Assembly (NCBI GenBank): GCA_964106645.2
Contig: OZ067038.1
DNA: 64,000 nt
From: Podarcis pityusensis
Taxonomy: Eukaryota
Direction: 5' to 3' (one strand)
Every line of letters begins with the position of its first letter. Within the stretch, counting starts at the first letter, position 1. A program made the translations under genes and the position numbers. A model generated the notes under the pieces. It had not been told where the DNA came from, did no database searches, and was given only the letters and a program-made list of their open reading frames with translations. Below, piece by piece: positions 15,354 to 59,715 of this stretch.

Positions 15354-17295
15354 TTATTATTTATACCCCGCCCATCTGGCTGGGTTTCCCCAGCCACTCT
15401 GGGCGGCTTCCAAAAGAATATTAAAATACTATGATACATCAAACATTAAAAGCTTCCCTAAACAGGGCTGCCTTCAGATGTCTTCTAAAAGTCTGGTAGT
15501 TGTTGTTCTCTTTGACATCTGGTGGGAGGGCGTTCCACAGGGAGGGCGCCACTACCGAGAAGGCCCTCTGCCTGGTTCCCTGTAACTTGGCTTCTCGCAG
15601 TGAGGGAACCGCCAGAAGGCCCTCGGTGCTGGACCTCAGTGTCCGGGTAGAACGATGGAGGTGGAGACGCTCCTTCAGGTATACTGGACCGAGGCCGTTT
15701 AGGGCTTTAAAGGTCAGCACCAACACTTTGAATTGTGCTCGGAAACGTACTGGGAGCCAATGTAGGTCTTTCAAGACCGGTGTTATATGGTCTCGGCGGC
15801 TGTTCCCAGTCACCAGTCTGGCTGCTGCATTCTGGATTAGTTGTAGTTTCCGGGTCACCTTCAAAGGTAGCCCCACGTAGAGTGCATTGCAGTAGTCCAA
15901 GCGGGAGATAACCAGAGCATGCACCACTCTGGCGAGGCAGTCCGCGGGCAGATAGGGTCTCAACCTACGTACCAGATGGAGCTGGTACACAGCTGCCCTG
16001 GACACGGATTTAACCTGTGCCTCCATGGACAACTGTGAGTCCAAAATGACTCCCAGGCTGCGCACCTGGTCCTTCAGGGGCACGGTTACCCCATTCAGGA
16101 CCAGGGAATCCCCCACACCTGCCCGCCTCCTGTCCCCCAGAAACAGTACTTCTGTCTTGTCAGGATTCAACCTCAATCTGTTTGCCGCCATCCATCCTCC
16201 AACCGCCTCCAGACACTCACACAGGACCTTCACCGCCTTCACTGGTTCTGATTTAAAGGAGAGGTAGAGCTGGGTGTCATCTGCATACTGATGAACACCC
16301 AGTCCAAACCCCCTGATGATCTCTCCCAGCGGCTTCATATAGATATTAAAAAGCATGGGGGAGAGGACAGAACCCTGAGGCACCCCACAAGTGAGAGCCC
16401 AAGGGTCTGAACACTCATCCCCCACCACCACTTTCTGAACACGGCCCAGGAGGAAGGAGCGGAACCACTGTATGACAGTGCCCCCAGCTCCCAGCCCCTC
16501 AAGACGGTCCAGAAGGATGTTATGGTCGATGGTATCAAACGCCGCTGAGAGATCCAGCAGAACTAGGAAACAGCTCTCACCTTTGTCCCTAGCCCGCCGG
16601 AGATCATCAACCAGTGCGACCAAGGCAGTTTCAGTCCCGTGATGAGGCCTGAATCCCGATTGGAAGGGATCCAAATGGTCCGCTTCTTCCAGGCGTGCCT
16701 GGAGTTGTTCAGCAACCACTCGCTCAATCACCTTGCCCAGGAATGGAAGATTTGAGACTGGGCGATAGTTGGCCATCGTGGCCGCATCTAAAGATGGTTT
16801 TTTAAGAAGCGGTTTAATAACCGCCTCTTTCAGCGGGTCTGGGAAGGCTCCCTCACGGAGGGAAGCATTCACCACCCCACGAAGCCCATCGCCCAGCCCT
16901 TCCCGGCTAGCTTTTATAAGCCAGGATGGGCAAGGATCAAGGAGACAGGTGGTTGGTTTCACTCGTCCAAGCAGCCTGTCCACATCCTCGGAGGTAACAG
17001 ATTGGAATTGATCCCACACAATTTGACTAGACAGGACTCTAGCACTCCCCCGCCCCGGCCCTGCTCCCACGGTGGCGTCTACCTCTTCCCGAATCTGAGC
17101 GACTTTATCTGCAAAAAACTTTGCAAAATCATTGCAGGAGATCATGTGGCCCGTATTGGGCCCCGATGTAGCAGGTGGTTCCGCTAAATTGCGGACCACC
17201 TGAAAAAGTCTCCTGGTGCTGTTTTCTGCAGATGCAATAGAGGCGGCGAAGAAAGCCTTCTTCGCCGTCGCTACCGCCACTTGGTAGGCTCGACA
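15320..17295 (-). mobile_element. Young 5'-truncated L2 LINE with (TTA)n tail
   Basis: Uninterrupted RT ORF, high CpG retention, 3' stem-loop gccgcccagagtggctggggaaacccagccagatgggcggggtata and (TTA)n tail at about 15320-15352; abrupt switch to AT-rich flank at about 17295. Confidence 0.97.
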
Positions 17296-17298
17296 CAT
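15439..17298 (-). CDS. L2 ORF2 reverse transcriptase (endonuclease domain missing), 619 aa from the junction ATG
   Basis: ORF track 15439..17367: NYRPVSNLPFLGKVIER, QSGFR..HGTETAL, LLDLSAAFDTIDH, GVPQGSVLSP, HQYADDTQLY, LNPDKTE, RLDYCN, LHWLPV; no stop or frameshift. Confidence 0.9.
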   Translation of the reverse strand: MCRAYQVAVATAKKAFFAASIASAENSTRRLFQVVRNLAEPPATSGPNTGHMISCNDFAKFFADKVAQIREEVDATVGAGPGRGSARVLSSQIVWDQFQSVTSEDVDRLLGRVKPTTCLLDPCPSWLIKASREGLGDGLRGVVNASLREGAFPDPLKEAVIKPLLKKPSLDAATMANYRPVSNLPFLGKVIERVVAEQLQARLEEADHLDPFQSGFRPHHGTETALVALVDDLRRARDKGESCFLVLLDLSAAFDTIDHNILLDRLEGLGAGGTVIQWFRSFLLGRVQKVVVGDECSDPWALTCGVPQGSVLSPMLFNIYMKPLGEIIRGFGLGVHQYADDTQLYLSFKSEPVKAVKVLCECLEAVGGWMAANRLRLNPDKTEVLFLGDRRRAGVGDSLVLNGVTVPLKDQVRSLGVILDSQLSMEAQVKSVSRAAVYQLHLVRRLRPYLPADCLARVVHALVISRLDYCNALYVGLPLKVTRKLQLIQNAAARLVTGNSRRDHITPVLKDLHWLPVRFRAQFKVLVLTFKALNGLGPVYLKERLHLHRSTRTLRSSTEGLLAVPSLREAKLQGTRQRAFSVVAPSLWNALPPDVKENNNYQTFRRHLKAALFREAFNV

Positions 17299-19411
17299 AA
17301 TTATTTGACTATACTGGGGATCTGTTCCAGTCCTTTTGAGCCCCTTGGCTGCAAATGAAGCAACCACAGTAGAAGCAAACGCAAACTGGCAGGGTGTAAA
17401 ATTGGTTTGGGGCTCATGTCTTTAAATGCATCCTGACCAAAAACAAAACAAAATACTCCCCATGTGAAATATTGTGGAGAACTTTAGCCTAAGGTCAATG
17501 GGATTATTTGCTATATAATTTCACAGAGATAAAGTACTACCCAGATGGTGAAAATTACATGACACAGTAACAGTCCTCAGCCCATGGTTTATTAGTCCAA
17601 TATTGTCAATGAAAACAACACCATTCAAAACATTTAAGGAAAAAGAGGCACATACATGCAATGGATGTTCTTATTTTGGGAGAAGCAGAGGAAAGATGGT
17701 GAGCATAATTTATTGAGACAGTCTTCTAACCAAAGCCCCTTAAAAACAATGGGAAGTTTGCAAGATCTATCATTCGCCATTTCACCTAGCTACAGCAGAG
17801 GAAAAGGAGAAATGAGATCAGGCCCACTCCATTAGTTGGCTGAGAGACCAGCAGCCATTCTCTCCCCCCACCCCCACCCCGCTCAGGCAACTATTTCCGT
17901 TCTAGCTGGTCATAACATGAGCGGCTGTGTAACTTTAAGAGTTGCTTGTTTCCCCCTTCTCTTTTTCTGTGTTGTGCCTTAGATTGAAAGCCTTTAGATA
18001 TACGGTGCTTGGGAGATTCCAGGTCCAGTACTTTATATTCAGTGGGCCAGTGCAGAAGTTGCAATGGATTGTGGCAAGTGAATGTTCGTTTCAGTGCACT
18101 GAAGTTTTAGCTTTTTCACAAATTTTGAAACAGAGGTGCAACAAGTGTTGCATTGCTATACTTGCACGTGGCTATGTAAACTGTTGCAAATATTTCATTG
18201 CTAATTATTAAAAAAAACACACACATTATAGTATAGGTCCATACCAGCAGTGCTCCATCTCCAAAACAGTTTTACCAGACTGCTTAGTCTGGTAAAAAAA
18301 TAACAGATGAAGAACACCTAGCAGTTGAAAAGGCAGGATATAAATTGAAGTAATTAAATGAAGAATCTCAGCATTTCTTTATCCGTTATTCAACCTGAAG
18401 AGATTCTGGTTGTGTAGATGGTGGAGTAATACCCTCTTCACTTGTTGAACTTATCTAGCACCAAATCATCTAGTACCTTCCACAGCGAAAGTACCAAGTG
18501 ATCATTACTATAGCCTTCTGGGCAAAATTTGAAGCACTTGCCTTGAATTTTAAAAGCTTTAAATTGTTTGAACTCATCTCCCCTCAGTTATCATCATCAT
18601 GATTTCATCTAATGGTGAACTCAGTGATAAGTGCCAACAGGACTGGAGCCAAACAGGACCACTGGGAAATAAGAGTCAGGTATCATACTTAGAGGGACCC
18701 CAAGGGTTGCAGAAGTACAAAAATAAAAAAGGAGAAAACCTAAGGGGCAGCACCTTCCAATGAGGACTGAACATGCTCAGGCTCTGTAAACATTACTGCT
18801 TACTCCAGCGCCAGTGTGCTCCCACCACTGGTGTCTGAAGCCAAGTATGCATGGTGTTAGCCACAGTCTTTATGCATCCTGTAGGTTTATTGTGTAGAGC
18901 AAGTGCAACTACAACTTGAAAGACAACTGGAGGAAGGGGCATGGATAGAACAACCTCCCTGCATTTTAAGCCACTCATGCGGACATAGCCTCAGGGGCCA
19001 CAGAAATGTTGCTAGAAGTGGTGGGAAACTGGAAGGGGGAAGGGGGAATGGTGTATCCTGGGGGGGGGGGGAGCATGGCTGGCTGGCAGCCTCTAATAGA
19101 GAATTTAGCTGGTTAAGTGCCTATCATTTTGGAAACGAAAGTGGGCCACACAAAAATAAGATAACTGCTTCTACATACTTGGGGAACACCCTAAGTAGGT
19201 AGAAGTACTTAAGTTTTGAATTAAAAGAAATTGATATTTTTAAAAACCCTTTTAAAAAACCTGCCAAAAACCTGTAAGTTTGTTGAACACTGATGGCAGT
19301 AAAGCCTATACAGAGAGAATGGGGTAAAAGAGGTTTGAAGAAATCTTCAGGCAAGTGAGATTCATTATTTATAATTAAATATGCCACATAATGCAATGTT
19401 CATGTGTAAGT

Positions 19412-47409: not shown

Positions 47410-47658
47410 CAGGGGTCAGCAACCTTTTTCAGCTGTGGGCCAATCCACTGTCCCTCAGACCATGTGGTGGGCCGGACTATATTGGGGGGGGGGTGTTAAC
47501 AAATTCCTATGCCCCACAAATAACCCAGAGATGCATTATAAATAAAAGGACACATTCTACTCATGTAAAAACACGCTGATTCCCGGACCATCTGCGGGCC
47601 GGATTGAAAAGGCGACTGGGCCGCATCCGGCCTCCAGGCCTTAGGTTGCCTACCCCTG
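47410..47658. mobile_element. Non-autonomous hAT (Charlie-like) element
   Basis: TIRs CAGGGGTCAGCAACC...GGTTGCCTACCCCTG; perfect 8-bp TSD ctctaaat (47402-47409 and 47659-47666). Confidence 0.92.
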
Positions 47659-56445: not shown

Positions 56446-58104
56446 AAATAAACAGGAGGCTGGTTATAAGCACTGTAAGATCAGAAATGAAACAAAACAG
56501 ATGGAGCTCATTACAAAGAATGCCTTTATGGAAATCTCTGTGTACATTAAAGAGAATTTCCACTTGGAAGCCAAAAGTAAATGGAACCCTGCCTGCATTA
56601 AAATGGCACCGTAGGAAATATGTTGGTCTGCTGTAAAATAACAAATAACTAGCCAGATACAATGACAACAATATTTCAATACAAACATACATAAAAACCT
56701 ACCTCCCCATCACTCATGCTTCATTACATGTAGGAGGGAAATGCACGCCACATAGGGAAAACATGAGAAAAAGGAAGCAGGATTGGATAAATTGGGGGGG
56801 GGGAGGTAATTCAGTTCAGCAATTGACTTTGTTCTTCCTTCCTTCCATCTATCCCTCCCCCTCCCCCTACTCCTTAGTCATCCACCATGAAATAAGCTTG
56901 TTAATTGCTCTGTAACCAAAGCAGCCTTTCCCTCCAATTGACTGAGAAGGCAATGCTACTGTCTAGGGATTACAGGCCCTATGGTGACAGTTTTAATTCT
57001 GGCCAGAGTGGAGAAGTCAATAAATCGTTCTTGCAGAAGTCGTTACTGACCCTGAGCAAGCCCTGGGAGAAGAGAAGCAATCTCCATCTACTGGAAAATT
57101 ATATATCTCCACAACCCCAAAGCAAACAAATAAAAGCTGAAGAAAAGAATACCATTTCAGAGGTAGGAGGAAAGCAATCTCCCTCTCTTTGTGTGACTTG
57201 TGTCTACAGAGAAGTAACTAGATGCAGGGTAAAACAACAACAAGGTGGGATACATTAGTATATTACTCTGTACTAGTCACAATAAATGTAATCTAACGCA
57301 GAGAGGCAACTGTATAGCAGTAAAATGAATGCAGGTTCCATCACTGAATGTCATATTCATTTGTGAGGGTTCTACTCCCACAACCTGATCCCATGAGGTC
57401 AACCTGAAAGGGGGCTTAAAGCCTATTTATTAAAGCAATGCAGATGACTGAATAAAATGTAACTCTTCATTAGAGGCAATTACTGTAGCCATGTGCCCTA
57501 ATTTACAAATGATAACTCTCTATTTGAAGGACTGTCCAGCTAGCACCTGGACAAGCTAATCAGACCTGTGCAGACAGAGCTTCCCAGTACGGTAAGATGT
57601 ACTATATTTTTGTTTAAATTCTAGCAATTATTTCTATATTTGCATATATACATATAAATTAGCACATTCAGATTTTATGCAAATCTTATTTCTCCTTTGT
57701 TCTCTTTTTGGTGATACATTTCCTCTTTGGGGACAATGCATATGTGGCCATCTTAGAGGCACAACCATTTTACACATTCTGCATAGTTGGTGTATCCTGC
57801 ATTATACATTTTCTTCTTGAGAAAGGGGGGTGTTATCCTTTTAACAACTCTTGAGGTTCACTTAATTTGGTTTGTTGAGCTTGTCCAGTTATATTTCCCC
57901 ATCTTTCTACTCCCACACTGGAATTTACAAAGCCTGAAATCCTAGATATTTCAAGAGATCAAGTGGGTTGCTAGCTAGTAGCTTAACTGAAGAATCATTC
58001 AATATTATGTTTCCTTCAAAGGACGGATTCTCAGTGGCGTAGCGTGGGGGGTGCCAGGGGTGCCGGCCGCACCGGGCGCAACTTCTGGGGGGGGCGCGAG
58101 TCCA

Positions 58105-58616
58105 GAGGGAAGGGGAACGCCCCTCGCTCAGCCCGCGCATCCCTCGCCCGCCGGCAGCTTCTCCTCCTCGCCTCGCTCAGCGCCGCCGCCGCGGATGCCG
58201 CCCAGACCCCCCAGCGCCCAGGGCCATTTCCCGGGGAGCCTCCTCTGGCACATGCCCCGCGCAGGAGGAGGAGGGGGAGGCGGCTCCGGGATGCTCCCTC
58301 CCGCCCCGGGAGGCAGAACGCAACGCACAACACACACACACCCTGTCGCCCCCGCGGCAGAGCAAGGCAGCCAGACGCGGAGCAGGGAGAAAGGCTCGGG
58401 CTCACCTTGGGGCAGCCTCCGGAGAAGCGAGTCCCGAGGAGGAGGAGGAGGAGGAGGAGGAGGAGGAGGAGAAGCCGCCGCTGCCGCTGCCGCCGCCGCC
58501 GTGCGCCCCCAGCACCGGGAGAGAGGCCGCTGGCCGCCCGGCGGGCCGTGGTTCCTTCCTCCGTCGGGCGCCCAAGGGGAGGGGGCTTTGGCTGCCTCGG
58601 CCCGCGGGGGCTCCAC
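58105..58616 (-). other. Captured CpG-island fragment resembling a host first exon plus start of intron 1
   Basis: Extremely GC/CpG-rich with sharp borders; (GGC)n and (CTC)12 repeats on minus; splice donor AAG|GTGAGC with exon end at 58406. Confidence 0.65.
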
Positions 58617-58639
58617 AAATAATAAATTTAATAAATTCC

Positions 58640-59226
58640 TTTTTTTAAAATAAGATATTTATTAAAGTTTTCAATTTTATACAAAGAGAAAAATGCAAAA
58701 AATAGAAAAAATATATATTAAAAACACATAAAATTCACAACTTATTTTTCAATAACATATTTCCCTGACCTCCTCATACCTCCCCTTCTTGTTTTCTAGT
58801 TCAAATTATTTGTTCAGCAAATCCTTATCTCATAGCATTACCGCTAAATAACACCTTATTTTCTATCCAAGTTCTTGAAACTTAAACTTTTACTTTAAAA
58901 AACCATTTTTTCATAACCTTTTATACCATTACAGCTAGAAACCACTTAACGTAATTTCAATCCAACATCATTCAACATTCCTTAATATTGCAGTATTTCT
59001 GTAAATAGTCCTTAAATTTCTTCCAATCTTCTTCTGCCGACTCTTCTCCCTGGTTGCGGATTCTGCCAGTCATTTCTGCCAATCCCATGCAGTCAATCAA
59101 CTTCATCTGCCATTCTTCCAGAGTGGGTAAATCTTGCGTCTTCCAATACTTTGCAATGAGTATTCTTGCTGCTGTTGTAGCATACATAAAAAAAGTTCTA
59201 TCTTTTTTAACACCAACTGGCCAACC
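58640..59226 (-). mobile_element. L1 LINE 3' end (ORF2 C-terminus, 3' UTR, polyA signal) inside the composite hAT
   Basis: KKDRTFFMYATTAARILIAKYWKTQDLPTLEEWQMK...DWKKFKDYL, stop at 58972; AATAAA on minus at 58658-58663; short A tail at about 58640. Confidence 0.88.
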
Positions 59227-59406
59227 CAGTGGCGTAGCATGGGGGGTGCAGGGGGGGCCGGCCACACCGGGCGCAACATCTGGGGTTAGGGCAAATCCAT
59301 GGGTTAGGGGGCGCAAATCCACAGGTTAGGGGGCGCAAATCCATGGGTTAGGGGGCGCAAATTACTTGCCTTGCCCCGGGTGCTGACAACCCACGCTACG
59401 CCACTG
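59227..59406. mobile_element. Complete 180-bp hAT MITE forming the right arm of the composite
   Basis: Own TIRs CAGTGGCGTAGC...GCTACGCCACTG; left about 57 bp nearly identical to 58032-58090; about four 22-bp tandem units ggttagggggcgcaaatcca. Confidence 0.9.
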
Positions 59407-59715
59407 CGGATTCTGCTCAGTGTTCTAAAAGCCAGAATTGATTCAAAAGCCAGGATATATGAATGAAAACATGTGATTCATTCCCTCAATTTATGAAGAA
59501 GTAACTCAAACAACTTAAGCAGAAGCACAAGCTTTTAAATCCCAAACATGAATGTAAGTATTGTGCTGCTATTCCATATATAGTGGAGCACCAGAGTCCA
59601 TAATGTACAACAGTGCCAGCATCTACACTTAATACCGTGACTACTAGATTACAACTAGCTTAGCAATGCCACCACATTCAAACCTAACAAGGAATGGTGA
59701 TAGAGCCCTTTAAGC

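Follow-up and report, generated by a model that had tools for sequence, protein, structure and literature searches.

Anatomy of the composite element

The window, meaning the whole 64,000-nt stretch of DNA analysed here, contains zero N and carries a 1375-bp composite element (58032-59406) made of a left end, a CpG-rich cargo, the 3′ end of an L1 and a complete 180-bp MITE. Its features run as follows.

58024-58031, no strand: left target-site duplication (TSD), 8 bp, CGGATTCT, an exact match to 59407-59414
58032-58048, plus strand: outer left terminal inverted repeat (TIR), 17 bp, perfect against the right TIR at 59390-59406
58032-58109, plus strand: family left end, 78 bp, 8/8 CpGs intact; 75/78 identical to L009:4127-4203, with the same breakpoint
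58110-58616, minus strand: CpG-island cargo, ascribed below to a putative donor 1; GC 0.75 and CpG observed/expected (o/e) 0.75, both measured on 58104-58617
58400-58408, minus strand: splice-donor-like site AAG/GTGAGC (slash at the boundary), GT at 58405-58404, the best in the cargo with a score of 6.2
58436-58501, no strand: (GAG)12 and (GCC)9 runs, repeat content typical of 5′ UTRs
58617-58639, no strand: 23-bp AT-rich spacer past the L1 poly(A), belonging neither to the L1 nor to the CpG island
58640-59226, minus strand: L1 3′ end with the last ~85 codons of ORF2, 3′ UTR, AATAAA and poly(A), its 5′ side cut by the inner MITE
59227-59406, plus strand: complete 180-bp MITE of the same TIR family but a different left-end subtype, with five CpG decays
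59291-59362, plus strand: 22-bp subterminal repeat, 3.3 copies, each with GGGTTAGGG
59324-59406, plus strand: family right end, 83 bp, 81/83 identical to L009:4693-4775
59407-59414, no strand: right TSD, 8 bp, CGGATTCT, an exact match to 58024-58031

Both the exact 8-bp TSD and the perfect 17-bp TIRs that the initial annotation placed around these 1375 bp are present in the sequence. From the composition of the window, an exact 8-mer at the right-hand position has a chance probability of ~1.3e-5, and empirically an 8-mer is repeated at the TSD spacing at 4/62,609 window positions. The TIRs start with CAGTG, the outer ends diverge beyond them, and the window holds three TIR copies only (58032, 59227 and 59390-59406). 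By its 8-bp TSD and its short TIRs beginning YARNG, the latter a hAT criterion (PMC3014272), the composite is a non-autonomous hAT-type element, in line with the hAT ends first proposed. The TSD does belong to the whole unit, as annotated: the outer pair is exact, the left flank of the inner MITE (GGCCAACC) is unlike its right flank, and the inner MITE's own left TIR matches at 16/17 positions. The TSD attests no more than the insertion of an element with these outer ends at this site; arrival of the whole unit and later filling are both compatible with it, and it is from the TSD that we infer movement of the composite as one unit. A third CGGATTCT at 59057 was considered as a hidden TSD and ruled out, being L1 consensus and present in both P. 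raffonei L1 copies. The target site (59407-59421) also resembles a motif in the carried L1 (59057-59070), with 10 bases identical, or 14 with one gap; this likeness is probably a coincidence because the motif is L1 consensus.

The four modules originally listed stand, with two corrections to their borders. The left end runs to 58109 rather than ~58103, terminating at the GGG of a degenerate 22-bp subterminal repeat unit, and the GC-rich cargo does not touch the L1 directly but is separated from it by the 23-bp non-L1 AT-rich spacer (58617-58639). GC content is 0.38 in the left flank, climbs to 0.75 in the cargo and drops to 0.31 across the L1 part, and the CpG o/e of the cargo (0.75) compares with 0.13 in the left flank and 0.22 window-wide.

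On the minus strand, the cargo reads like the start of an intron 1 (58110-58405) joined to a non-coding first exon (58406-58616), and the CpG island is probably a gene start, which would give it a host-gene origin. The splice-donor score is modestly above chance, being equalled by 29/1000 shuffles. No parental copy of the cargo lies within 58 kb to the left or 4.6 kb to the right of the unit, the rest of the window and 220 kb of lacertid loci contain no match to it apart from the GAG run, and no repeat match appears in the 284 kb compared locally; an exon scan of the window returned no recognisable host gene or host exon. With no parent found and a donor site that shuffling can equal, the cargo, earlier designated a host exon, is a candidate for one. 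Long GC-rich ORFs across the cargo were set aside, being stop-poor from composition and lacking an ATG where the cargo is exon-like.

Over 249 bp, the L1 part shares 83% identity with a 5′-truncated P. raffonei L1 copy (locus L005) that has its own poly(A) and TSD. The peptide of that copy matches the C-terminus of RT-bearing proteins, and one relative aligns to LINE-1 ORF2p 1138-1238. With its ORF2 C-terminus, 3′ UTR and poly(A) tail, the carried piece reads as a member of the L1 clade, a class assigned via the 83%-identical L005 copy; searching Pfam, PDB and Atlas with only the 87-aa L1 peptide gave no informative result. In the ORF2 of the L1, GGCCAACC translates to VGQ with a one-base frameshift; relatives agree, and in them a G-x-x-I-x-K motif lies just upstream; the left flank of the inner MITE is therefore L1 ORF2 sequence, and the insertion of this MITE in L1 coding sequence, part of the initial annotation, holds. 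No L1 TSD pair accompanies the carried L1, which rules out its direct insertion into the element: the L1 did not retrotranspose here. The L005 copy has its TSD at the same place as the spacer of the composite, and the 23-bp spacer is most likely the native 3′ flank of the L1 copy at a second donor.

The inner MITE is TIR-bounded and non-coding with a fold z of -3.8, as expected of a MITE, and no simple copy of it occurs in the 220 kb of lacertid loci. The GGGTTAGGG motif in its 22-bp subterminal repeat is telomere-repeat-like. Five of its 15 CpG sites have changed to TpG or CpA, and three repeat units show TG, CA and TG at one and the same CpG site, whereas the outer left end has lost none. 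Judged by this contrast (one-sided Fisher p 0.07, or 0.011 under a post hoc split that groups the last ~60 bp with the outer ends), the inner MITE looks older than the outer ends, rather than nested later. Other possible causes of the CpG retention at the outer ends are selection to keep these ends working and shielding by the CpG island. The recent event first proposed is supported in so far as the outer ends look young (8/8 left-end CpGs intact); the CpG kept in both TSD copies, its original ground, is only weak evidence of age.

The window contains other mobile elements. A simple 249-bp hAT MITE of another family (47410-47658) has an exact TSD, CTCTAAAT, and a TIR that starts CAGGGGT and resembles the anole hAT-HT2 type. 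An uninterrupted 642-codon L2-type RT frame (15439-17367, minus strand) shares 95% identity with Podarcis muralis proteins and appears to be a young LINE insertion. At the DNA level its identity is 98% with a P. muralis copy, 95% with P. raffonei and ~92.5% with Zootoca copies, which places the genome among the lacertids, most likely in Podarcis.

A sister element with different cargo

The family was sampled in nine lacertid loci totalling 220 kb (~105 kb Podarcis, ~115 kb Zootoca), fetched via unrelated proteins; the sample is tiny, but blind to the family. Its sole family member is a 649-bp element of P. raffonei (L009:4127-4775), which lies within the ZNF704 gene range and has its own exact 8-bp TSD, CCTCAGTG. 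No other TIR copy that could belong to an autonomous partner occurs in the window or in these loci, and the Zootoca NT5C3A locus has no family member. The right end of the sister element is the same as that of the composite, without any inner left end. Its cargo has a GC content of 0.63, a CpG o/e of 0.88 against ~0.2 in the flanks, and CCAAT and GC boxes; it is CpG-island sequence unrelated to the cargo of the composite, and no copy of it is found elsewhere in the L009 locus. Both copies bearing this left end (2/2) thus hold promoter-like cargo, different in each. In the composite as in its sister, the cargo borders lie at the G-rich 22-bp repeat, and G4Hunter rates the two left ends as G4-prone.

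A sister with the same ends, its own TSD and a different CpG-island cargo argues that the two form a cargo-carrying hAT family, probably of the Pack-TIR type, and not a one-off event, and it supports the idea of a wider cargo-carrying system in lacertids. It also suggests repeated uptake of gene starts by the family, in the manner of some plant transposons. A 10-nt run, CTCAGCCCGC, is common to both cargos (58127-58136 and L009:4221-4230), in exact register 17 nt past the left-end breakpoint; 11/20,000 random offset pairs give such a run. It could be left over from a longer family end or from an earlier common cargo.

The sampled loci hold further insertions. A 267-bp GC-rich hAT-like MITE of another family in Zootoca (L002:17577-17843), with an exact TSD, ACCACTAG, sits in the ORF2 C-terminus of an L1-like element. 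Two hAT-like elements of P. lilfordi (L006:14573-15218 and L006:18772-18979) have other TIR types and GC-rich interiors, and the first, 646 bp long, may also carry cargo. A GC-rich block of Zootoca without TIRs and with AT-rich flanks on either side (L001:851-1300) is possibly a Helitron-like insertion, and CpG-rich coding stretches at L003:5700-9450 and L004:1450-4300 are LTR-retroelement-like.

Origin of the cargo

We consider it somewhat probable that the cargo was acquired by template-switch capture in a young, non-autonomous Podarcis hAT family. Copies of such a family would share a fixed 78-bp left end and a right end of ~83 bp around exchangeable cargo, and a transposase supplied in trans would, as hAT biology leads one to expect, bind both ends, excise the element and reinsert it with an 8-bp TSD. 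Repair of a break in the G-rich 22-bp subterminal repeats, or of a fork stalled there, would copy cargo in, with template switches to no fewer than two donors: a CpG island, and an AT-rich locus with an older MITE inside an L1. One strand would copy the CpG island while the other invades the older MITE copy, guided in this second switch by the homology of the element's right end with that MITE of the same TIR family. Synthesis continuing through the MITE left end into the L1 would leave the extra left end.

Gap filling and fork template switching are routes proposed for animal Pack-TIRs (PMC8277862). Template-switch capture is favoured here because there is no second right end between cargo and L1, because the L1 has kept a 23-bp AT-rich flank lying right against the CpG island, which points to a second donor, and because of the CpG decay of the inner MITE. 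The sister element, with its shared ends, common left breakpoint and unrelated cargo, speaks for it as well, as do the junctions at the 22-bp G-rich repeat and the G4-prone left ends. Against it stand the single sister element in the sample and the failure to find a parent of either cargo: 57% of the Pack-TIRs of Tan et al. lie within 15 kb of their parent (PMC8277862), whereas the composite cargo has none within 58 kb to the left or 4.6 kb to the right. The 10-nt in-register match between the cargos also counts against this reading and goes without explanation under it.

Alternatively, the initial annotation had a transposase pair a distant left end with the right end of the MITE on one donor chromosome and lift the contiguous block between them (end-bypass or alternative-end transposition). 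We regard this as less parsimonious than template-switch capture and rather unlikely, although several features count in its favour: the TSD encloses the unit in full, the inner MITE is intact with its L1 flank kept, the outer TIRs match each other at 17/17 positions against 16/17 for the inner left TIR, and MITEs do insert in L1 ORF2, as at L002:17577-17843. Such a transposition requires, however, that the left element's own right end was lost without trace and that an L1 with its AT-rich flank already lay right against a CpG island. Later nesting of L1 and MITE in a Pack element would make the inner MITE the younger part, yet it is the more decayed, and the sister element has the same right end without the inner left end.

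It is less likely still that the GC-rich part is the interior of a transposon subfamily, amplified with the element rather than captured from a gene start. GC-rich interiors occur in other lacertid hAT-like MITEs (L002:17577-17843 and L006:18772-18979), no cargo parent was found, the splice donor is modestly above chance (29/1000), and a 10-nt run is common to both cargos in register. Near-identical ends nevertheless hold unrelated interiors in the two copies, and the triplet runs, donor site, and CCAAT and GC boxes are typical of gene starts. That the unit is an assembly chimera of reads joined through MITE copies is very improbable, given the exact TSD on both sides with no gaps, a cargo/L1 junction in non-repeat sequence and an element of like design in an independent assembly.

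Relation to known cargo-carrying transposons

Capture of genomic DNA by a lizard hAT, even together with TE pieces, is already known. According to Novick et al. 2010, anole hATs acquire genomic DNA together with fragments of TEs, and recombination occurs between their families (PMC3014272). The composite is like hobo_AC and hobo-N1 to N15 of Anolis carolinensis in its similar ends, variable interiors and captured DNA with TE fragments (PMC3014272). Unlike in those elements, its TIR matches none in Table 1 of Novick et al.; the anole hobo elements are larger, and their cargo is presented as filler with TE content rather than as CpG islands or gene starts (PMC3014272). Across 100 animal genomes, Tan et al. 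2021 list 370 Pack-TIRs, 208 of them hAT and four multicopy, among them the frog hAT Pack-hAT-N8_XT of Xenopus tropicalis, which carries a piece of the 5′ UTR of CAPSL (PMC8277862). The view in the initial annotation that capture is much less described in amniotes than in plants is accordingly tempered by these 370 animal elements and by the anole hATs with captured DNA.

Like animal Pack-TIRs, the lizard elements have non-autonomous hAT ends and a TSD around an interior that reads as non-TE. Animal Pack-TIRs number ~2 per 10,000 TIR elements and are mostly old, single-copy and near their parent (PMC8277862). By contrast, the two lizard copies observed are young, each with cargo and neither with a parent close by. 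The survey of Tan et al. included no lacertid and found no Pack-TIR in the anole, where only 77 TIR elements were annotated (PMC8277862). A literature search whose coverage stopped short of Repbase, Dfam and most subscription journals yielded no account of this lacertid family, and a young amniote or lizard family that repeatedly captures different CpG-island cargo far from any parent appears undescribed.

Rice Pack-MULEs, which favour GC-rich gene sequence, offer a similar design: family ends around different GC-rich gene fragments with a sharp GC step at the TSD, open chromatin having been proposed to favour capture (Zhao et al. 2018, PMC5861414). The lizard family likewise has its ends around different GC-rich cargo, with a GC step at the TSD. 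Pack-MULEs belong to the Mutator superfamily, with long TIRs, an 8-11-bp TSD, ~3000 elements, mapped parents and measured expression (PMC5861414), whereas the lizard element has hAT ends and 17-bp TIRs, beyond which the ends differ, in place of Mutator-type long TIRs, and two copies were examined. By analogy, the lizard element would work like a Pack-MULE but is a hAT.

In animals, TIR transposons are held to capture sequence rarely, locally and for the most part independently of transposition (PMC8277862). On its own, the one copy described here, which lies in a stretch devoid of recognisable exons, does not demonstrate any function. We tentatively entertain, as a possibility that falls short of an expectation, that a hAT family has been active recently in wall lizards and that a large proportion of its copies bear captured CpG-island promoters or first exons, different from copy to copy, with some drawn from several donors and then re-amplified; it would be an amniote counterpart of rice Pack-MULEs that spreads working promoters and splice donors. 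If so, the repeated packaging of CpG-island gene starts by a young vertebrate family would be an exception to the animal pattern. The cause of the cargo bias to GC-rich gene starts was left open for Pack-MULEs (PMC5861414), and the lizard family would provide a testable animal model for it. Several chromosome-level Podarcis genomes allow parents, empty sites and expression to be scored. The family would also be a possible source of new promoters and first exons.
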